From Oikopleura dioica (taxonomy: Eukaryota; Animalia; Chordata): a stretch of 64,000 nt of DNA. The stretch spans positions 11,160,001 to 11,224,000 of the forward strand of contig OU015569.1 in the NCBI GenBank assembly GCA_907165135.1. The letters are read 5' to 3'. Positions 12,678 to 21,705 of this stretch are shown piece by piece. Each line of letters starts with the position of its first letter. Position 1 is the first letter of the stretch. Both the position numbers and the translations under genes were made by a program. The notes beneath the pieces were generated by a model. The model worked only from the letters and a program-made list of their open reading frames with translations, was not told the origin of the DNA and did no database searches.

Positions 12678-12887
12678 TGCCTTTTTTTATCGCTTTTTCA
12701 CTCTTGCAAAAATATTTTCTCGCTAAAGTGAAGAGAAAGATTCGCAATCGCCGCAGCTCGATTTCAAAATGCAGGTGTTTCGTTTTTTGTTGTTGAAGAT
12801 GGCTTGATGGCGCGCACGCAATTTTTCCGCCGTTGAATTTCGCGATTTCAAAGATTGAGAGCAAAATTGAGAGTCAAAGAGAGAGAA
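12678..12887. promoter_or_regulatory. Head-to-head (bidirectional) promoter between the NDUFS1-like gene and RING-SIM gene copy 1
   Basis: Only ~210 bp separate the divergent ATGs (12677 minus, 12888 plus). Contains GATGGCGC and TTTTCCGCC motifs shared with the upstream regions of the other copies. Confidence 0.55.
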
Positions 12888-13725
12888 ATGAATTCCAACG
12901 CCAGAATTCCCGACAACTGCGTTCTCTGCGATAAAGTCGTCATAGAGAGCTATTGGTTCCCGATTGAAAGTTTGAGATGCTGTCATCAACAGTACTGTGC
13001 CGAGTGTCTCGGTTTAGTGGCTTGGTGTCCAAAGTGCCATCAATTTCTTGTAAATGGCCGAAAAATTATCTTCACTCATAAATTTTAAGGGACCAAAAAG
13101 GAAAAATGGCGCCAGCAGAGAAAGCTTTGCGAAACCCATCCCCTCCCTCCCTGTTGTGGAAGTTCTTAAGAAATCTACGCCTAATGCTGAAGTCAACAAT
13201 TTTCATGAAGACTTCCATGACGACGAGGATTGTGTTATCATCGAGGATGAGTCGGAAGGCAATTCAAACAAGTCCCCGAAGAAAAGAAAGATGGAAGTCA
13301 ACAATAACGACGATTGCATCCTCATCGAAGATGATCTGGATGGTAATTGAGAATCCTTTTTTTTTTCATAAAAATAAGCTTCTTTCAGAAGTTATTCCTC
13401 CAGTGCCGCAACCACGAAAATCAATCCTCAAGAACAGCAAGTGCGCCACTTCTCTTCAACAATCAAGTCACAAGAAAAGAAGGATCGATGTCGACAATAA
13501 CAACGATATTATAATCATCGACGATGAACCAGATGGTAATTCAAAAATCATTAATTGATAAAATAATACTATTTGCTTTTAGAACGCATCCCTCCAGTGA
13601 CGAAACCTCAAAAAAGATCGATCCTCAAGAAAAGCAGGCGCGTTTATTTCTCATCAAATTCTTCTGTCTACGTGTTTCTAAAAGAAACAGACAAACCTAT
13701 GCGTCCATTGCCAACCGACCGCTAA
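12888..13725 (+). CDS. Tandem family copy 1: RBBP6-type RING-like finger + 3 SIM-like motifs + NLS + SILK/RVxF PP1-docking tail
   Basis: CVLC-x16-CCHQQYCAEC-x6-CPKC; 40-nt intron 13050-13089; DCVIIEDE, DCILIEDD, DIIIIDDE; last exon SILKKSRRVYF; stop 13723-13725. Confidence 0.75.
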
Positions 13726-13944
13726 GGAATCAAAGTAGCCGATTATACCTCGCTCTTTCTTATTATGACCATAAAGTTTGATTGTAGATTCATGAAAATA
13801 CTATTTGAACATAACTTTTATCCACCTGTACAATTGTTATCTACACTGTAAAAATTTGTAAAAATATAGCATCAATGTCAATGATTTATCGACAAAAAAC
13901 AAAACTATCCTACAGTAGTTCATATTGAGAACCAGGAAAAGATT

Positions 13945-14150
13945 TTATTTCTTGAGAAGAGGGATCAGTTTTCTCTGAGTTTCTCGTGAATTTGCTGTTT
14001 CTTCTGATAAGTGAAATTCTCTGTCGCAGAAAAAGTTTGGATTCCGAAATTTCGGACACGAGTTCTTCCAGCTTTGGTTTTGCTCTTTACCAGCCACGGA
14101 AGATCTCGGATTTTGTTGCTTTTCCTTTTCGAATTTGAGAAATTTTGTCA
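13945..14150 (-). repeat. Dispersed duplicate of 27420-27660 in inverted orientation
   Basis: Minus strand here and plus strand at 27462-27650 both encode DLPWLVK.K.KA.RTRVRNFGI.T.SATENFT.QKKQQIH.KLR; roughly 85% identity by eye. Confidence 0.75.
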
Positions 14151-14269
14151 ATGATTCGCCAAACAACAAAACCAGCGGAGTTAACATTCAGGAAGCAAAG
14201 CAATTACTGCAGCCTTTTTCTAAAATCCTTTTGAATTGTTCGATTTGAAAATGCAGATGTTCAGTTGCT

Positions 14270-14318
14270 GATGGCGCTGGCGCACTTTTTCCCGCCTTTT
14301 TTGTTTCAAAAATTTGAA
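14270..14318 (+). promoter_or_regulatory. Conserved proximal promoter block of the tandem family (GATGGCGC, E2F-like TTTCCCGCC, CHR-like TTTGAA)
   Basis: GATGGCG at 14270, TTTCCCGCC 14288-14296, TTTGAA 14313-14318. Same arrangement at 17099-17145; variants upstream of copies 1, 3 and 5. Confidence 0.45.
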
Positions 14319-14343
14319 ATCGACAAAGAGGAAAATAAGAGGA

Positions 14344-15197
14344 ATGACCTTCAGTGTGTCAGTTTTTGACAATTGCGATGTCTGCCGCAAAGTCTTCAGG
14401 TTCAATTTGAAAGATTTTGGATGCTGCGGTCAGAAAGTCTGCCCCAGCTGTTTCTATGTGACGATTTGGTGTCGAAAGTGCGAACTTTTTCATCATGTAA
14501 ATTGTCGACTTATATTTTTACTTAATTTTATTAAAGGAGTTCAAAAAGAAAAATGCAAAAGGCTGCATTAAACCCATTGTGAGACGAAGAGGTGTACCAG
14601 AAGAATATTTCGACTCGCCGGTTATTGAAAATGATCTCAACGAAGCTTTTCACGAGGCTTTCCATGAGAGGCATTGCAAAATCATCGAGGATGAGTTGGA
14701 CGGTAATTCAAAATCAAATTTTAGCAAAATAATTTTTTGTGTTAGAAGTCATCCATCCAGCGCCGAAACAAAAAGAATCAGTCTTCAACGAAGAAAAGGA
14801 TGCTTCTTCTCCTCCACAATCAAGACACGGCTCCCTTTACAACCGCATTTACGCTTTCATCGACAAGAACAATCCTTTTTCTGGAGAAAGCCTTACAACT
14901 GAAAAGCCATCCCCGAAGAAAAGAAAGATTGACATCAACAATAACGACGATTGCATAATCATCGAGGATGATAAATCCGATGGTAATTCAAAATATTTTT
15001 GTTTTTTTTTTAAATAAGCTTTTTTGTTAGAACGCATCGCTCCTGTGCCTAAACCAAAAACATCGATCCTCAAGAAAAGCAAGCGCGTCACTTTCTCATC
15101 TGATTCTCTTTCTGTTTGCTCGTTTCTCAAAGAAACTGACGAACCTATGCGTCCATATCCAAAAAGAAATCGCAGAAAAGTCAGCGCTGATATTTGA
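14344..15197 (+). CDS. Tandem family copy 2: RING-like + SIM-like + SILK/RVTF
   Basis: CDVC..CCGQKVCPSC..CRKC; CKIIEDE, DCIIIEDD; TSILKKSKRVTFSSDSLSVCSF; same intron positions as copy 1. Confidence 0.75.
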
Positions 15198-15546
15198 AGC
15201 GTCTCCTTTTATTTAATTTTTTCTGGCTCTTTTTCTTATTATGTACATAGAGTTTCATTGTAGATTCCTCTAGACACTATTCGAAGATATTTATTATCCA
15301 CCTGTATACTAGCCCATTTCACTGTAAAATTTAAAAATTTGTTAAATATAACTTCATTGTCAATGATCCGACAAACAACGAAACAAACGGAGTTTCTTCA
15401 AGAAAAGCAATTACTGCAGCCTTTTTCTAAAATCTTTTTGAAATTTTTGATTTGAAAATGCAGATTTAGTTGCTGATGGCGCTGGCGCACTTTTTTTCCA
15501 CCGTTGATCATTTTTTTTCAAATTTTCAAAGAGCAAAATAAGAGAA

Positions 15547-16704
15547 ATGACCTTCATCGTCAACAAAAAATGTAGTGTCTGCCGCAAAGTCGTCAGCTTC
15601 AATCTCGAAGAATTGAGATGTTGTCTTCGAAAAACCTGTCCCGACTGTGTTCTTGACAAAATCCGGTGTCCAAAGTGCATAGTTTTTCTTCATGTAACTT
15701 GTCTAAAAACTATTCTTTTTTTGATTTTATTTAGGACCGTAAAAAGAAGAAAAGAAGGGGCTCCATGAACCTAACCTTGACTAGACAGAACGCGTTTCGA
15801 GGAAATATTGGGGGAAAATATTTCAGCTCTTCGGTTGTTCTGCCTCAGACGCCTGACTGCATAATCATCGAGGATGAATCAGGTAGTATTTCAAACATTT
15901 TTTTATATAAGTATTTCTGTTAGAAGTCATCCCTCCAGTGCCAAAACCAAGAAAATCACTCCTCAAGAAAAACAGCCGCAACACTCCTCTTCAATCAGCA
16001 AAAGTGATCTTGAATCTAGATGTTGAAGAAGGCGGGAAAGTAAGATCATATGCTGAATTCATTAGCTCATTTCGCGCTTAGGCTGATGGACTTGAAAAGA
16101 CTCCCAAACCAGATCAGAAATGCGAGCGATCATGGATCGACTTAGGCATGGCCAGCCAGAGCTTTCTTTACGAGCAGTTCTTGTACCTTGTTTACGCTTT
16201 CATCAACAGGAAGAAATCTTCTTCTGGCGAGAGTTCTCAAAAGCTCGTTGTTCCTGCTCCAAAACCGGAAAAGCGAGTTTGCTCGCTTTCGTCTGAAAAG
16301 CAGTCCCCGAAGAAAGGAAAGATTGATATCAACAATAACGACGATTGCATAATCCTCGCGGATAAAGGGAATGGTAATTCAAATTCAATTTTTATTCAAA
16401 ATAAGCTCTCGTTTTAGAAAAAGTCCCTCAAATCCCAAAACCAAGAACATCAAAGCTTAAGAAAAACAGCCGTATTTCTTCTCCTCAGGAATCAGCAAAA
16501 ATGACCTTGAATCTGGACCATGGAAAAGGAAAGAAAAAGACCGCCGAGCGAGCTCAGAAATCTGAGCTTCAAAAAAGCATGGACGGAGACATCTTCCTTT
16601 ACGAGCAACTCTTGGAACTGGTTCACGTCTTGATCAGATGCAAGGAGAGCTCTGAAAATCTCGCCGTTCCCTCTTCAAAGCCGGAAGAGCAAGTTTCATT
16701 ATGA
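15547..16704 (+). CDS. Tandem family copy 3: RING-like + SIM-like modules, no RVxF tail
   Basis: CSVC..CCLRKTCPDC..CPKC; DCIIIEDE, DCIILAD; five exons joined by short GT-AG introns; ends EEQVSL*. Confidence 0.7.
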
Positions 16705-17168
16705 CGATAATGAATCACAATTTGTGATTTTTGAAGTGTCGCTTTTAATTTAATCATTTCTCGCTCTTTGTTTATATGTACATGAAGTTTCATTGTAGAT
16801 TCATCAAATCATTATTTGAACATAACTATTATTCACCTGTATACTTATCTTCGAAACTGTAAAAACTGTAAAAACATGTAAAATACACAATCGTCGATGA
16901 TTCGACAAACATCTAAACCCATGGTCCATGGAGTTTATGGTTATTCAGGATTTAAAACCATTAGTACAGGCTTTTTAAATTAGCGCAGCATAAATTCATT
17001 TAAAATAATATTTTAAATTTCCACATGCGTTTTTTTTTAAATTCGCCGCGCTCGTTCAGCACCACGATCAGTCTTTCAACAGTCTCAACAGATGGTTCGA
17101 TGGCGCTGGCGCACTTTTTCCCGCCTTTTTTTGCAAAAATTTGAAAGTCAAAGAGGAGAAAAAGAGGA

Positions 17169-17972
17169 ATGACCTTCAGTGCATCAGTTTTCGACAATTG
17201 CGATGTCTGCCGCAAAGTCTTCAGGATGAATCTTACAGATTTAGGATACTGTGGTCAGAAAGACTGCCACAACTGTTTCTTTGTGCCGATTTGGTGTCGA
17301 AAGTGCAAAGTTTTTCATCATGTAAATTTCCGACTTATATTTGTTTTACTCAATCTAATTAAAGGACCTAAAAAAGAAAAATGAAAAAGGCTGCATTAAA
17401 CCCCTTGCGAGACGAAGAGGTGTACGAAAAGAATATTTCGACTCTCCGGATCTCAACGAAGCCTTCCACGAGGCCTTCCATGAGGAGCATTGCAAAATCA
17501 TCGAGGATGAGTTGGACGGTAATTCAAAATCATATTTTTGCAAAATAACTTTTTGTGTTCGAAGTCATCCCTCCAGTGCCAAAACAAAGAGAATCAATCC
17601 CCAACGAAAATAAGGATGCTCCTTCTCCTCAACAGTCAAGACACGGCTCCCTTTACAACCGCATTTACGCTTTCATCGACAAGAACAATCCTCTTTCTGG
17701 AGAAAGCTCTACAACTGAAAAACCGATGCCGATGAAAAGAAAGATTGATATCAACAATAACGAAGATTGCATAATCATTGAGGATCAATCCGATGGTAAT
17801 TCAAAATCATTTATATTAAAAATTAGATATTCTTTCAGTTGTCATCCTTCCAGTGTCGAAACCAAGAAAATCGAAGAAAAATCAGCTCTTTACTTCTGTC
17901 CAAGAGTCAGAAAGCACGATCTCAAATTCTCTAGACTCAGAAGAGCAAATTGGCAGTCAAAAACACAAATAA
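17169..17972 (+). CDS. Tandem family copy 4 (closest to copy 2); RING has CC>YC, no RVxF tail
   Basis: CDVC..YCGQKDCHNC..CRKC; exons 2-3 nearly identical to copy 2; last exon ends IGSQKHK* at 17970-17972. Confidence 0.7.
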
Positions 17973-18482
17973 AACTTGCTATTGCTGGTCTTGCTATGTG
18001 TGCTCTATGTGCTCTTTCGAGTCAAAGCCACTCGAACCCGTCCGTCATGACGAGTATGAAATTTGAATTGTGTTTTAAATAATCATTTATCGTTCTTTCT
18101 TTATATGTTTATAAGGTTTCATTGTAGATTCATCAAATCATTATTTGAACATAACTATTATTCACGGCTGCCGGGGGTTTTGCCTGAGCGGGGGTTTGAC
18201 CTGGCGTCGGATTTGCCTGAACGGGGGTTTGACCTGCCAGGTAAATCCGACGCTCAGGTCAAACCCCCGTCAGGCTAATCTGACGCTAGGTCAAATCCCC
18301 GTTTGGTCAAAGTTTCATTTACGGAAAAGGACGGAACAAACTCACACAAGGGGGGATAGGCTAGGCTTCAGTAACCCTAAGACGTGCTTTTTTAAGGTTA
18401 ATGGAGTTGTCCAGCTCAATTCCGCCTTATAGACCCCCATACGCGATACCTTTTTAGAAACTTTTACGAACTTTGAAGGTAT

Positions 18483-18841
18483 AAAATTCTAGAAAACTCC
18501 ACTTCCGGTCGATTCTATAGCCGGATGTTGAAGAAAGTTAGGAGTTATGGTAAAGTGTGACCTATCAAATTGATGCCCAGAAAATTTTGAGCCATCCTAT
18601 AATCAATATGTCAGAAGAAACAGTCCCAAACGTGGTCAAACCGACCGGTAAAATTATGTAAAAAAGGCATAAATTGATATTTTTTCTGTTTTATCCGTTT
18701 GGTTTGATCCCCGGTAAAGTTGATTCTTTTCTCAAATGAAAGGAAATCGTCTGTGCATCAATTTGATATCTCACACTTCACCCTCCAACCTTGATTTCGT
18801 CAACTTCCGTCGTCAACCGGAAGTGGAATTTTCTAGAGTTT
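18483..18841. repeat. ~29 bp inverted repeat pair inside the MULE-like element (probable nested MITE relic)
   Basis: AAATTCTAGAAAACTCCACTTCCGGTCGA versus the reverse complement of TCAACCGGAAGTGGAATTTTCTAGAGTTT; 3 mismatches. Confidence 0.55.
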
Positions 18842-19012
18842 AAAAATTTCTCCTTGCTTGCAAATTCTTGAACTACTACTAGAAGAAAATTGTTCTAGTT
18901 CGCAAAAATACGAGCTAGGAGAAAATTCTCCTAGTGACGGCGTACAACTGATACACAGTGGCAAAAAGGTTAAACATTCTCGCATGATAAGATTAAAGTA
19001 AATTTTGATTAA

Positions 19013-19766
19013 GGATATAGCCGTTCTCAAGGCACTTTCGTAGCGCCGAAATGGAGCGATAAATTTTTTTCATTTCAAGACAGGTCCTACCTAAAATTAT
19101 GTCTGGAATTCGATTCTGATTTTTTTTTTAATTTTTTTCAAAGAAAATTTCTCTCTGGAGCGATTTGAAATCTTACGATCACTTTTTCTCGAATTTTTTC
19201 AATTAAATCGCTAAAACTAAACCGTGTTTTATTATAAATAACTGCTAATCTATCAACCTAGGGCCTCAAAATTTCAAAACCCGAGCAAATTTCCATTCTA
19301 GCGTCTTCTTCTTTTTGGCTTTTCTTTTTCATAAATGCTGCGTTCAGGGCGCTGGGCCAATCAGCGCGCTCTTTCACATGCGCGCCTCACCGCGCGATGG
19401 AGGAGGGCGCCCAGCGCAGCAAACCAGAGCGCTGTCTGACGCTTCGGCTTACTCAAGTAAGCCTCATAAAAATGGCTCTAGAACCATAAATAATTTGAAT
19501 CTATTAAACTTTAAGCCCTAGAAATGTAGAGAAAGGTCCAAATTTTTAATTTATCAAAAAAACTCGACCGATTTAATGGAAAATTCTCGAGAAAAAGTGA
19601 TCGTAAGATTTAAAATTGCTCTAGAGAGAAATTTTTCCATTAAAAAATTAAAAAAAACACTAGAATCGGGTTTCTTAGGCAATTTTAGGTAGGGTTCCTT
19701 TTGAAATGAAAAAATTTTATCGTCCCCTTTTGGCGCTACGAAAGTGCCTTGAGAACGGCTATATCC
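19013..19766. mobile_element. 754 bp Kolobok-like MITE nested in the MULE-like element
   Basis: TTAA|GGATATAGCCGTTCTCAAGGCACTTTCGTAGCGCC ... GGCGCTACGAAAGTGCCTTGAGAACGGCTATATCC|TTAA. Long imperfect TIRs; GC-rich core with CCAATCAG. Confidence 0.85.
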
Positions 19767-20279
19767 TTAATAATAAATGAATAATTTTCAATTTAGAAAG
19801 TCACATTTTTCCATCCAAAAAACGGCGCTTTTGCCTGAATGGGGGTTTGACCAGAGCGTCGGATTTACCTGGCAGGTCAAACCCCCGTTCAGGCAAATCC
19901 GCCGCCAGGTCAAACCCCCGCGCAGGCAAATCCGCCGGCAGCCATTATTCACCTGTATACTTATCTTCAAAACTGTAAAATCATGGAAAATATACAATCG
20001 TCGATGATTCGACAAACATCAAAACACATGGAGTTTATGGTTATTCAAGATTTAAAACCATAAGTACAGGCTTTTTAAATTAGCGCAGAATAAATTTATT
20101 TAAAATATTATTTTATATTTCCGCATTCGTTTTTTTTTAATTCGCCGCGCTCGTTCAGCACCACGATCAGTCTTTTTGATCAACAGATGGTTCGATGGCG
20201 CCGGCGCACTTTTTCTCGCCGTTGAGTTCTCTGATTTCGAAAATTTGAGCGAGAAAAGAGCGTGAAAAAAGATAGAGAA

Positions 20280-21259
20280 ATGGAAGTTGATTCTCAAAGT
20301 CGGATTTCTACCCGCAATGCCAAAGCGAGATTACGGGCGAAGACTATGAACGAGGCGATGGAAGAACTTAACGAAATGAGTCGAAAACATCTCGTTAAAA
20401 GGAAGCGTTGTCCTGGAAAGAAGCGTCATGTAAGAAATCAACTATGAGCTCGTTTTATGGAAATTATTTCAGACAAAACTGTGCACTCTTCGCAACACAA
20501 AAGACGTGATCTTAATAATGGAGGAGGAGCTTGCTGAGTACGAAACTGGGCTTGAAAACCTGTGTAGAATGCCTGAATTAGGGGTTAAAAAATCTTTAAT
20601 GAAAAGCAACGGGGCCTTTCCGAAAAGATTGGAAAGGAAATAGCGCGGCTTTCAACCCTGAGTCAGGTATTCTACACAGGTTTCCGAGCCCAGGTACGAA
20701 AGGCACAATAAACTGCTAGAAAAGTATGTTTCGGATAACGATGGATTCTTGCGGACACAGCAAGAAAGATCGGAAAATAAGCGAAAAGAAGATGAGAAAA
20801 AACAAGCTCTTCTTGTGGCTCAGTACGAAAAGGACATTTCCAACTACGAAAGCGAGCTGGAAAAGATCAGGCTGGAGCTCGCAAAATGCAAAGAAGAACT
20901 GAAATCGAAAGGAGAATCGCGCCGCGATTCAGTTGAAAAGCAGTCGACGAAGAAAATAAAGATTGAAATCAATAATAACGACAATTCGACAAACAAATTC
21001 ATCAAGCTTGAGCCGCAAGGTAATTCATATCCATTTCTATATCAAATAAAATATCCCGTTAGATTTCATCCCTCCATCGCCGAAATCAAGAGGATCGAAG
21101 CTGAAATCGAAAAAGCGCGTTTCTTTCTCCCCGGAGAATCAGATCCGCGTGTTCAAAAGAGAAGCTGGCAGAACAATGCGTCCACTACCGGTTCCATACC
21201 GGCGTATACAAACTCGCAGAACTGGCAAAGCTGTTCGAAAAACAACCCGTCCGTCATGA
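20280..21259 (+). CDS. Tandem family copy 5: divergent bHLH-like head + coiled coil + NLS + RVSF/phi-phi PP1-docking tail
   Basis: Exon 1 RNAKARLRAKTMNEAMEEL; 43-nt intron 20430-20472; TKLCTLRNTKDVILIM; 156-nt MITE-derived intron 20538-20693; coiled coil; last exon KSKKRVSFSPENQIRVF; shares promoter and 3' UTR with copies 1-4. Confidence 0.7.
20546..20693. mobile_element. 148 bp MITE (CTGGGC...GCCCAG family, 8-bp TSD) forming a GT-AG intron together with its TSD
   Basis: TSD GTACGAAA at 20538-20545 and 20694-20701; ~38 bp imperfect TIRs. Confidence 0.85.
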
Positions 21260-21705
21260 CGATTATGAAATTTAAAAATGCCTCTTTTTATCATTATTTT
21301 TTAAAACCATTTCTTGCTCTTTCTTTCTTTGCACATAATAATTTTTTGTAAATTCATCGAATCATTTTTGAACATAACCATTTTTCACCTGTATATTTGC
21401 CTTCCTGTAAAAACTTTAAAACTGATAAATATAACGTCATTGTCAATAATTCGACAAACAAAAAACGACGGAGTTTTTATTCATTCAGGAAACAAAAATA
21501 ACTACTGCAGGCTTTTTCGAAAATCTTCCTCGAGCTCTAAAAGCAAAATTTACAGTTATCAGATTTCTTTTCTTTTACCGCTTTCAATCAGTTTGAGCGC
21601 TTCCTCCACTGCTTTTGAGCTATTTTCGCTGTCGTAAACGTCTGAGAATAGATTTCAAGCTCGCTGTTTCTCAATTCTCATTCTTCAAAAAGAAGAAACA
21701 TTCGC

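Follow-up and report, generated by a model that had tools for sequence, protein, structure and literature searches.

A tandem gene array on the Oikopleura dioica X with PP1-docking-like tails and either HLH or RING-like heads

Genes of the array and their shared sequence blocks

Oikopleura dioica is a tunicate, and the subject of this analysis is a tandem array of five related genes, g1 to g5, in the X-specific region (XSR) of its OKI2018_I69 assembly. The array spans positions 12888-21259 of the window, which is the whole 64,000-nucleotide stretch analysed (G000:C2:11160001-11224000). With a sixth copy on chr1, the genes form a family of modular proteins, three of which end in a string of putative docking motifs for protein phosphatase 1 (PP1), while the heads are either of helix-loop-helix (HLH) type or RING-like. 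All five genes of the array lie on the + strand and were modelled from the three forward frames and splice signals. Every intron in g1-g5 is of the GT..AG type and 40-48 nt long, except one g5 intron of 156 nt. The exon models are letter-for-letter identical to the public records Oidioi.mRNA.OKI2018_I69.XSR.g16624 to g16628 (Table 1), and exact-protein look-ups for the g1 and g2 transcripts returned nothing on record. The Okinawan assembly was made from a single male, and its genes were predicted by AUGUSTUS with intron and exon hints from RNA-seq (PMC8008620). Genome searches covered the 64.3-Mb assembly in 19 contigs. Exons were searched singly and full-length searches used database records; exons were joined for coordinates, motif counts and the ratio of nonsynonymous to synonymous substitution rates (dN/dS) only. 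All functional statements on the family rest on in silico analysis.

A preliminary description of this locus had proposed five paralogues sharing promoter, first-intron position and 3' untranslated region (3'UTR), and the upstream and downstream alignments and the splice models agree with it. The promoter box lies ~60 nt upstream of the ATG. Its 16-mer GATGGCGCNGGCGCAC has exactly four copies in the 64-Mb genome, all upstream of g2-g5, and a reversed-pattern control has none. The box was considered as a regulon motif and rejected, being family-specific in the genome. An E2F-like 8-mer, TTTCCCGC, is exact only in the boxes of g2 and g4 (two of six family promoters). The first intron has phase 0 and follows 49-54 codons in each of the five genes. 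Blocks such as TTTCATTGTAGATTCAT, TCACCTGTATAC, CTGTAAAA and TGTCAATGATTCGACAAACA are common to all five 3'UTRs. It is noted that the 3'UTR blocks are kept across all paralogues and the chr1 copy and are locally more conserved than synonymous sites (86% identity between g3 and g4), which could be due either to gene conversion or to a post-transcriptional element that the genes have in common.

The count of five holds for the tandem array, but the family has a sixth member, g3439, on chr1. This gene has only two coding exons and has a promoter box variant, a module and 3'UTR blocks in common with the array, while its tail (..KSKKKKTAKDVRK..) contains no RVxF motif. In six-frame whole-genome searches the finger exon was found four times and the RVxF exon three times, at this locus only. 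Open reading frames are kept in all five X-linked genes and in the chr1 gene.

Two splice sites deserve mention. In intron 2 of g4 (17519-17564) the ancestral acceptor AG has mutated to CG, and splicing takes place at the following AG, which lies 3 nt further downstream; the shift removes one Glu codon and the annotated protein is concordant with it. Inside the coding region of g5 there is an inverted-repeat element resembling a miniature inverted-repeat transposable element, bounded by GT..AG (20538-20693). The public g5 model excises it exactly as an intron, and the protein P0004 reads ..AEYE|RHNK.. across the junction; a splice around the inverted repeat with a GTTAAA donor was rejected in favour of this annotated intron. 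A further element, 1,778 bp long and non-autonomous, lies within the g4 3'UTR (18166-19943). Its terminal inverted repeats (TIRs) of 103 nt are 95% complementary and flanked by a 9-bp duplication, ATTATTCAC, which suggests a Mutator-like element. The TIR family has at least 6 further copies, and one on contig C1 is 100% identical across 163 nt, so transposition has been recent.

Table 1. Genes, exons, motifs and shared blocks; positions are those of the window unless a contig is named
Feature	Position	Strand	Remarks
g1 (g16624, P0003)	12888-13725	+	234 aa; exons 12888-13049, 13090-13342, 13389-13535, 13583-13725
g2 (g16625, P0002)	14344-15197	+	240 aa; exons 14344-14496, 14537-14702, 14746-14982, 15031-15197
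g3 (g16626, P0008)	15547-16704	+	329 aa; five exons
g4 (g16627, P0001)	17169-17972	+	223 aa; finger with YC
g5 (g16628, P0004)	20280-21259	+	245 aa; exons 20280-20429, 20473-20537, 20694-21019, 21063-21259
Sixth member g3439 (P0007), L001	chr1, G000:C4:12620904-12621477	minus	177 aa
g1 PP1-docking string	13618..13713	+	SILK, RRVYF, VYVF, MRPLP (invariant Arg)
g2 PP1-docking string	15063..15161	+	SILK, KRVTF, VCSF, MRPYP
g5 PP1-docking string	21095..21190	+	SKLK, KRVSF, IRVF, MRPLP
g1 finger exon	12888..13049	+	sole copy with full C-x2-C..C-x-H-x3-C-x2-C-x6-C-x2-C spacing
g2 finger exon	14344..14496	+	CC-G replaces C-x-H
g5 E-protein-type HLH	20280..20537	+	helix 1 and loop in exon 1, helix 2 in exon 2
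E-protein (E2A/TCF4) bHLH gene, L006	G000:C1:2050477-2051784	minus	single clear one in genome
g1 SIM-like motif 1	13228..13251	+	DCVIIEDE
g1 NLS/CDK-like site, then SIM-like motif 2	13273..13335	+	SPKKRKME, then DCILIEDD
g1 SIM-like motif 3	13505..13528	+	DIIIIDDE
g2 weaker SIM-like motif	14672-14695	+	HCKIIEDE
g2 NLS/CDK-like site, then SIM-like motif	14910..14972	+	SPKKRKID, then DCIIIEDD
g1 promoter box	12806..12831	+	variant of family box (GATGGCGCGCACGC..TTTTTCCGCC); upstream alignment
g2 promoter box	14270..14296	+	contains TTTCCCGC
g3 promoter box	15475..15500	+
g4 promoter box	17099..17125	+	contains TTTCCCGC
g5 promoter box	20194..20220	+
3'UTR blocks	13726-13990, 15198-15400, 16705-16900, 17973-18165 plus 19944-20010, 21260-21470		paralogue conservation

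Tail motifs and body modules

The last exons of g1, g2 and g5 encode the same succession of motifs: S[IK]LK, 2-3 residues, [KR]RV[YTS]F, a PhiPhixF element (VYVF, VCSF or IRVF) and an Arg in MRP-x-P. There are 7-8 residues from RVxF to the 'xF' of PhiPhixF, then 8 residues to the Arg. SILK, RVxF, PhiPhixF and Arg are established short linear motifs for PP1 (PMC11536154), and this is their order in PNUTS-type regulators (PMC10731240, PMC11536154). The RVxF motif is defined as [K/R]-x0-1-[V/I/L]-x-[F/W], where x is not Pro (PMC10731240); RRVYF of g1, KRVTF of g2 and KRVSF of g5 all fall under this definition, and the strict consensus is matched by g2 and g5 only. The preliminary description had placed three tail peptides, each with a terminal RVxF and a downstream motif, at 13618, 15063 and 21104. 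These positions are exact, and the last-exon frames it had predicted are the annotated frames in g1, g2 and g5. The RVxF and the downstream motif are present in all three, with the reservation that RVYF of g1 conforms to the loose definition only.

A comparison of the tails supports their reading as PP1 docks. Identity between the g5 tail and the g1 and g2 tails is only ~40%. Among the three, 8 of 9 literature-defined motif positions are invariant, compared with 8 of 37 other positions (Fisher p 3.6e-4). The composite pattern RVxF-x(4-8)-PhiPhixF-x(6-9)-R arises in 0.05-0.4% of residue shuffles per protein. The docking motifs claimed earlier (SILK, RVxF and phi-phi) are thus found in published order and spacing, with selective conservation of the motif positions, and the interpretation of the tails as PP1-docking segments has become stronger. 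RVxF is missing from g3, g4 and the chr1 copy, so that 3 of the 6 members keep the PP1 string. The g4 tail is homologous to that of g5, but its RVxF has decayed (KKNQLFT). In g3 the last exon is a different cassette, which repeats the module of exons 3 and 4. No Pfam domain covers the tail motif region, and its presumed disorder is read from the low model confidence in the ESM Atlas (pLDDT 0.45 for g1 and 0.61 for g5). Among the listed results of a literature search there was no Oikopleura paper on PP1 or RVxF.

Behind either head, the body of the proteins is a chain of symmetric phase-1 exons, one cassette per exon, with one to three modules. The cassette starts with E-[VR]-IPPVPKP-[RK]-KSILKK, which contains SILK or a SILK-like element and in which R-K-S-I fits the Aurora-type pattern R-x-S-hydrophobic. 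Some cassettes continue with a helix-like stretch, LYxxIYAFI, which can be aligned to the coiled-coil region of g5 and the chr1 copy. The end, SPKKRKID-INNNDD-CIIIEDD-x-D, combines a classical nuclear localization signal (NLS) and an SP-x-K site of cyclin-dependent kinase (CDK) type with a hydrophobic-acidic core of the type found in SUMO-interacting motifs (SIMs). There are three such cores in g1; g2 and g4 have two each, one of them the weaker HCKIIEDE; g3 has two, one degenerate (DCIILADK); and g5 has none. The earlier claim of SIM-like motifs is supported, in that the cores recur at the ends of module exons far above the level of residue shuffles (p<=0.013 per protein). SUMO binding by the family is plausible.

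Heads, origin and evolution of the family

The preliminary description had treated g5 simply as the copy lacking a finger. Its head is instead an HLH of E-protein type, and the E-protein descent of the HLH in g5 and in the chr1 copy, missed earlier, is new here. Against the PDB, g5 matches E2A, E47 and TCF4 across the whole HLH (E 0.001-0.0035), and for g5 and the chr1 protein together E47, E2A and TCF4 are the best PDB matches over helix 1, loop and helix 2 (E 3e-4 to 3.5e-3). The Pfam HLH model stays under its gathering score (11.3 against 20.7 bits), and the ESM Atlas gave no usable feature match for g5. A weak match of g5 exon 1 elsewhere in the genome led to the E-protein gene L006, whose product matches the human E2A and TCF4 structures with E 4e-19. 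In pairwise comparison with the HLH segment of L006, g5 gives E 2e-6, the chr1 protein E 1e-6 and a European Nucleotide Archive (ENA) fragment, P0005, E 8e-5. L006 has a ~250-nt intron between loop and helix 2, and its phase-0 position (..KPQ | TKL..) is the same point as that of the first intron of g5 (..KRH | TKL..).

The g5 intron at the E-protein position is the 'shared first intron' of the whole family. The HLH heads of g5 and g3439 probably derive from L006, and because the HLH matches L006 and the phase-0 intron position is shared, the family founder was a duplicate of an E-protein (E2A/TCF4/daughterless) basic HLH (bHLH) gene. The common intron position of g5 and the E-protein gene also implies that the finger genes arose by a head swap, in which the HLH exons were replaced in g1-g4 by one RING-like finger exon. 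When the genome was searched with a profile, no donor of this exon came up. In g5 the Glu that contacts the E-box is replaced by Ala (NAKAR, compared with NARER in E47); the chr1 copy keeps ER-x-R, but its upstream basic residues are lost. For these reasons the HLH heads look Id-like. A coiled coil follows the HLH in both proteins.

The four fingers had been described as a CxxC..CC-x4-CxxC..CxxC type resembling the RING of RBBP6/Mpe1. A RING of C3HC4 or C4C4 type has eight zinc ligands in cross-brace spacing. Only g1 shows the complete C3HC4 arrangement, C-x2-C-x16-C-x-H-x3-C-x2-C-x6-C-x2-C; six residues make up the loop ahead of the final pair, which reads CPxC, and Cys2 is preceded by a hydrophobic residue. 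At the His ligand, g2, g3 and g4 have G, L and G, and in g4 the CC pair reads YC, without its first Cys. Seven Cys are invariant across the fingers of g1-g4, and the fourth zinc ligand of the second site is missing in three of the four. Part of the earlier description stands, in that RBBP6 aligns in register with g1 (g1 alone against the PDB, E 2.6); the uniform Cys pattern does not.

The RING identity itself could not be upheld at threshold. Pfam scans, run exon by exon and on the full records, found no domain at threshold; zf-C3HC4_3 is detected in g1 only, with E 0.15 and 12.3 bits against a cut-off of 27. The finger profile reaches TRIM23 (E 0.05) and PCGF6 (E 0.59) in the PDB, neither significant, and RING-match E-values across methods range from 0.05 to 5.8, none of them significant. 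The ten top-scoring named clusters for g1 in the ESM Atlas all belong to the RING clan (top score 0.90), which is a lead only, and the Atlas's own g1 model has template modelling (TM) scores of 0.62-0.72 to RING-type models. AlphaFold2 run on the four-sequence finger alignment gave no confident fold (mean pLDDT 54.5 when g2 headed the alignment, 42.2 when g1 did), and the quality of these models was too low for use in a fold search. Considering that every method places the finger nearest to RING fingers, 'RING-like' seems a fair description. E3 ligase activity of the g1-g4 fingers is weakly supported, and ubiquitylation by g1-g4 is speculation, because the RING assignment stays below thresholds and a zinc ligand is missing in three of the four fingers.

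The claim that the family is fast-evolving stood up to a selection check. Between paralogues, dN/dS amounts to 0.4-0.7 overall, with finger values of 0.5-0.9, and exceeds 1 only in the decayed g4 tail. The identity between units is a mosaic: the upstream regions of g4 and g5 are 81% identical and the 3' regions of g3 and g4 86%, whereas synonymous sites of the same pairs differ by 42-72%. This mosaic indicates unequal exchange or gene conversion between array units. Against alleles from TARA Oceans, the ratio of nonsynonymous to synonymous polymorphism (pN/pS) is ~0.1-0.4, based on very few sites, in line with some constraint on the family.

The lineage restriction claimed earlier was borne out by an exhaustive profile search of 1.84 billion representative proteins, which recovered only the six O. 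dioica genes and three short open reading frames from ENA/TARA metagenomes, attributed to Oikopleura. Word-index searches with g4 exon 3, P0002 and P0004 returned only the window's own proteins, and scans of JGI metagenomes with a DNA pattern and a back-translated peptide pattern gave no match. The family thus appears Oikopleura-restricted as far as annotated proteins go. One metagenome sequence, L004, is a diverged g5-type gene with an intact DDCIIIEDD core and a last exon that starts with GSILRK. Two TARA Oceans contigs from different samples, L005 (1-623) and L007 (1-563), are 98.9% identical and have a common hybrid junction, in which a g5-type last exon is cut after ..KKKRVSFSPE and fused to the final part of g3 intron 3 plus exon 4 of g3. 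In wild populations they probably represent a genuine recombinant paralogue or allele, one that this assembly does not contain.

Readings of the family and comparison with known systems

We favour the reading that the genes encode lineage-restricted, disordered nuclear adaptors that would target PP1, with interchangeable heads, regulation by mitotic kinases and plausibly SUMO binding, and we put its probability at about 0.5. In the proposed mechanism, the tail of g1, g2 and g5 would recruit the PP1 catalytic subunit, and the head, through HLH dimerisation or the finger, would select a nuclear target together with the SIM-type cores. Tail-less members (g3, g4 and the chr1 copy) could serve as PP1-free competitors. 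PP1 would be released once RV[S/T]F and the SILK Ser are phosphorylated. KNL1 with Aurora B is a case of PP1 release by phosphorylation at the x position. More generally, phosphorylation of Ser or Thr at this position frees PP1 in other regulators (PMC10066265). The O. dioica X is enriched in maternal promoters, which are often bound by E2F1 (PMC6389100); these data, the X-linkage and the E2F-type element in two promoters suggest maternal expression of the family, as a lead only. While the gene structure, the family limits, the E-protein descent, the motif content and the selective conservation of motif positions are shown by the sequence analysis, we only infer that the proteins bind PP1 and SUMO, are under kinase control and have nuclear or maternal expression.

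Several points weigh against the PP1-adaptor reading. The x position of RVxF in g1 is Tyr, outside the strict consensus; a strict definition of the Hendrickx type reportedly excludes Tyr there. RVxF alone arises in 7-16% of shuffles of these basic proteins, a spurious KVVSF occurs inside the finger of g3, and the PP1 motif statistics were computed post hoc. SILK and RVxF lie only 3-4 residues apart, compared with 8 in Inhibitor-3 (PMC10066265), so the two motifs may not bind one PP1 molecule together. SILK-like elements also open modules that have no RVxF and may have another purpose. The hydrophobic-acidic cores belong to proteins of transcription-factor descent and could serve in activation instead of as SIMs. 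Three of the six members have lost the tail and dN/dS is high, so constraint is weak.

Some of these points recur in the strongest of the other readings, that of Id-like or decoy bHLH regulators, which we consider unlikely but deserving of attention. Here the HLH members would titrate E-protein partners, and the finger genes would be young, weakly constrained, decaying offshoots; the basic and hydrophobic-acidic elements would be an NLS plus activation or degron motifs, and the RVxF-like tail a PP1-free relic or a product of chance. The damaged basic region in heads of E-protein descent (Glu to Ala in g5, loss of upstream basic residues in the chr1 copy) agrees with it, as do the high dN/dS, the loss of the tail in g3, g4 and chr1, the chance frequency of RVxF alone and a tail-truncating structural variant that segregates in wild populations. 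It is harder to reconcile with the selective conservation of PP1-motif positions between tails that are ~40% identical, with the rarity of the composite string in shuffles, and with the retention of open frames in all five X-linked genes and the chr1 gene, of GT..AG introns in the X-linked genes, and of the promoter box and 3'UTR blocks.

The preliminary description itself had proposed an active RING E3 combined with SIMs and a PP1 dock, in other words a SUMO-targeted ubiquitin ligase (STUbL) with a built-in phosphatase dock. All methods do place the finger nearest to RINGs (zf-C3HC4_3, TRIM23, PCGF6, RBBP6 and the ESM Atlas with TM 0.62-0.72), g1 has the full C3HC4 spacing with the hydrophobic residue before Cys2 and CPxC, and there are 2-3 SIM-like cores per protein. 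We nevertheless regard this model as improbable, given that the RING matches are not significant (E 0.05-5.8; Pfam score of 12 bits, cut-off 27) and AlphaFold pLDDT is 54 and 42. Only 7 Cys are invariant, with G/L/G at the C-x-H ligand in g2-g4 and the adjoining Cys gone from g4, and dN/dS in the finger is 0.5-0.9. A finger that is exchangeable with an HLH head is also a better fit to targeting or dimerising than to catalysis, and known STUbLs have a C-terminal RING whose dimerisation is required.

A more sweeping version joins most of these elements. In a chordate lineage, the E-protein duplicate would have become a plug-and-play PP1 adaptor, its head swapped between an HLH dimeriser and a working RING; the finger members would be the first ligases to read SUMO, ubiquitylate and dephosphorylate on one 230-residue scaffold, with maternal expression from the X and evolution by conflict. 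This is a long shot. Least probable of all is an X-linked ampliconic, conflict-driven family of germline or meiotic-drive type with arms-race turnover, whose PP1, SUMO and RING-like elements would act on germline chromatin or segregation: the tandem arrangement in the X-specific region, the lack of a Y copy, mosaic unit similarity from unequal exchange or gene conversion (81% and 86%, with far more diverged synonymous sites), the g5/g3 hybrid junction in two independent TARA assemblies and an X enriched in maternal, often E2F1-bound promoters (PMC6389100), with TTTCCCGC in the g2 and g4 boxes, all suit it, but dN/dS stays <1 outside the decayed tail of g4, the copies number only five, and the E2F-like 8-mer is exact in only 2 of 6 promoters.

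Regarding the PP1-adaptor reading, the interest of the locus lies in the fact that PP1 specificity comes from hundreds of adaptors defined by short motifs, the origin of new adaptors being poorly documented. Here the birth of such a family would be legible in one genome, from a transcription-factor duplicate as founder to phase-1 exons that each carry one motif cassette; the same genome also shows exchange of HLH and finger heads and loss of the PP1 tail in some copies, with structural variants still segregating. If PP1 binding is true, the genes would be candidate lineage-specific PP1 regulators for Oikopleura research, which may be maternal because they are X-linked and two promoters have the E2F-like element, and the tails would form a compact natural test case for combining the SILK, RVxF, PhiPhixF and Arg motifs. 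If it fails, the locus is an ordinary young gene family.

We have compared the family with known systems that share some of its parts. RNF4 and Slx5-Slx8, which are STUbLs, are likewise small, with several SIM-type cores and a RING finger; the RNF4 type has two or more SIMs, each a hydrophobic core of 3-4 V/I/L residues flanked by acidic ones, together with an active RING. In the family, the finger is N-terminal, below thresholds and degenerate in three of the four copies, and homology to these ligases is undetected; we know of no PP1 dock in RNF4-type ligases. RINGs of the RBBP6/IAP type (zf-C3HC4_3) resemble g1 in CC-x4-C-x2-C, in the loop of only six residues ahead of the final Cys pair and in CPxC, whereas E-values of 0.15 to 5.8 are no evidence of membership and the zinc ligands of g2-g4 are incomplete. 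With E proteins, Id and Emc, g5 and the chr1 member share an E-protein-type HLH with the identical intron position, and with Id proteins an impaired DNA-contacting basic region. Unlike E proteins, the family has no E-protein activation domains, has added a coiled coil, the NLS/SIM module and the PP1 tail, and has lost the HLH entirely in four paralogues.

For the tails, the closest likenesses are among PP1 regulators. In Inhibitor-3 (PPP1R11) and the KNL1 N-terminus, as in the tails, a SILK-type motif lies N-terminal of RVxF, with a basic NLS-like linker between them (residues 27-43 of Inhibitor-3; PMC10066265), and Ser or Thr occupies the RVxF x position as in g2 and g5. In the family, by contrast, the linker has only 3-4 residues, the CCC inhibitory motif and the kinetochore domains are missing, and SILK-like elements also occur without RVxF. 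In the tails of g1, g2 and g5, a putatively disordered segment, RVxF is followed by PhiPhixF 7-8 residues on and by Arg 8 residues later, and PNUTS and spinophilin share this string of motifs (motif descriptions in PMC10731240 and PMC11536154). There is no sequence homology between these regulators and the family, whose array proteins are 223-329 aa long and carry the string at the extreme C-terminus on its own exon, in one tunicate lineage to which the family appears confined.

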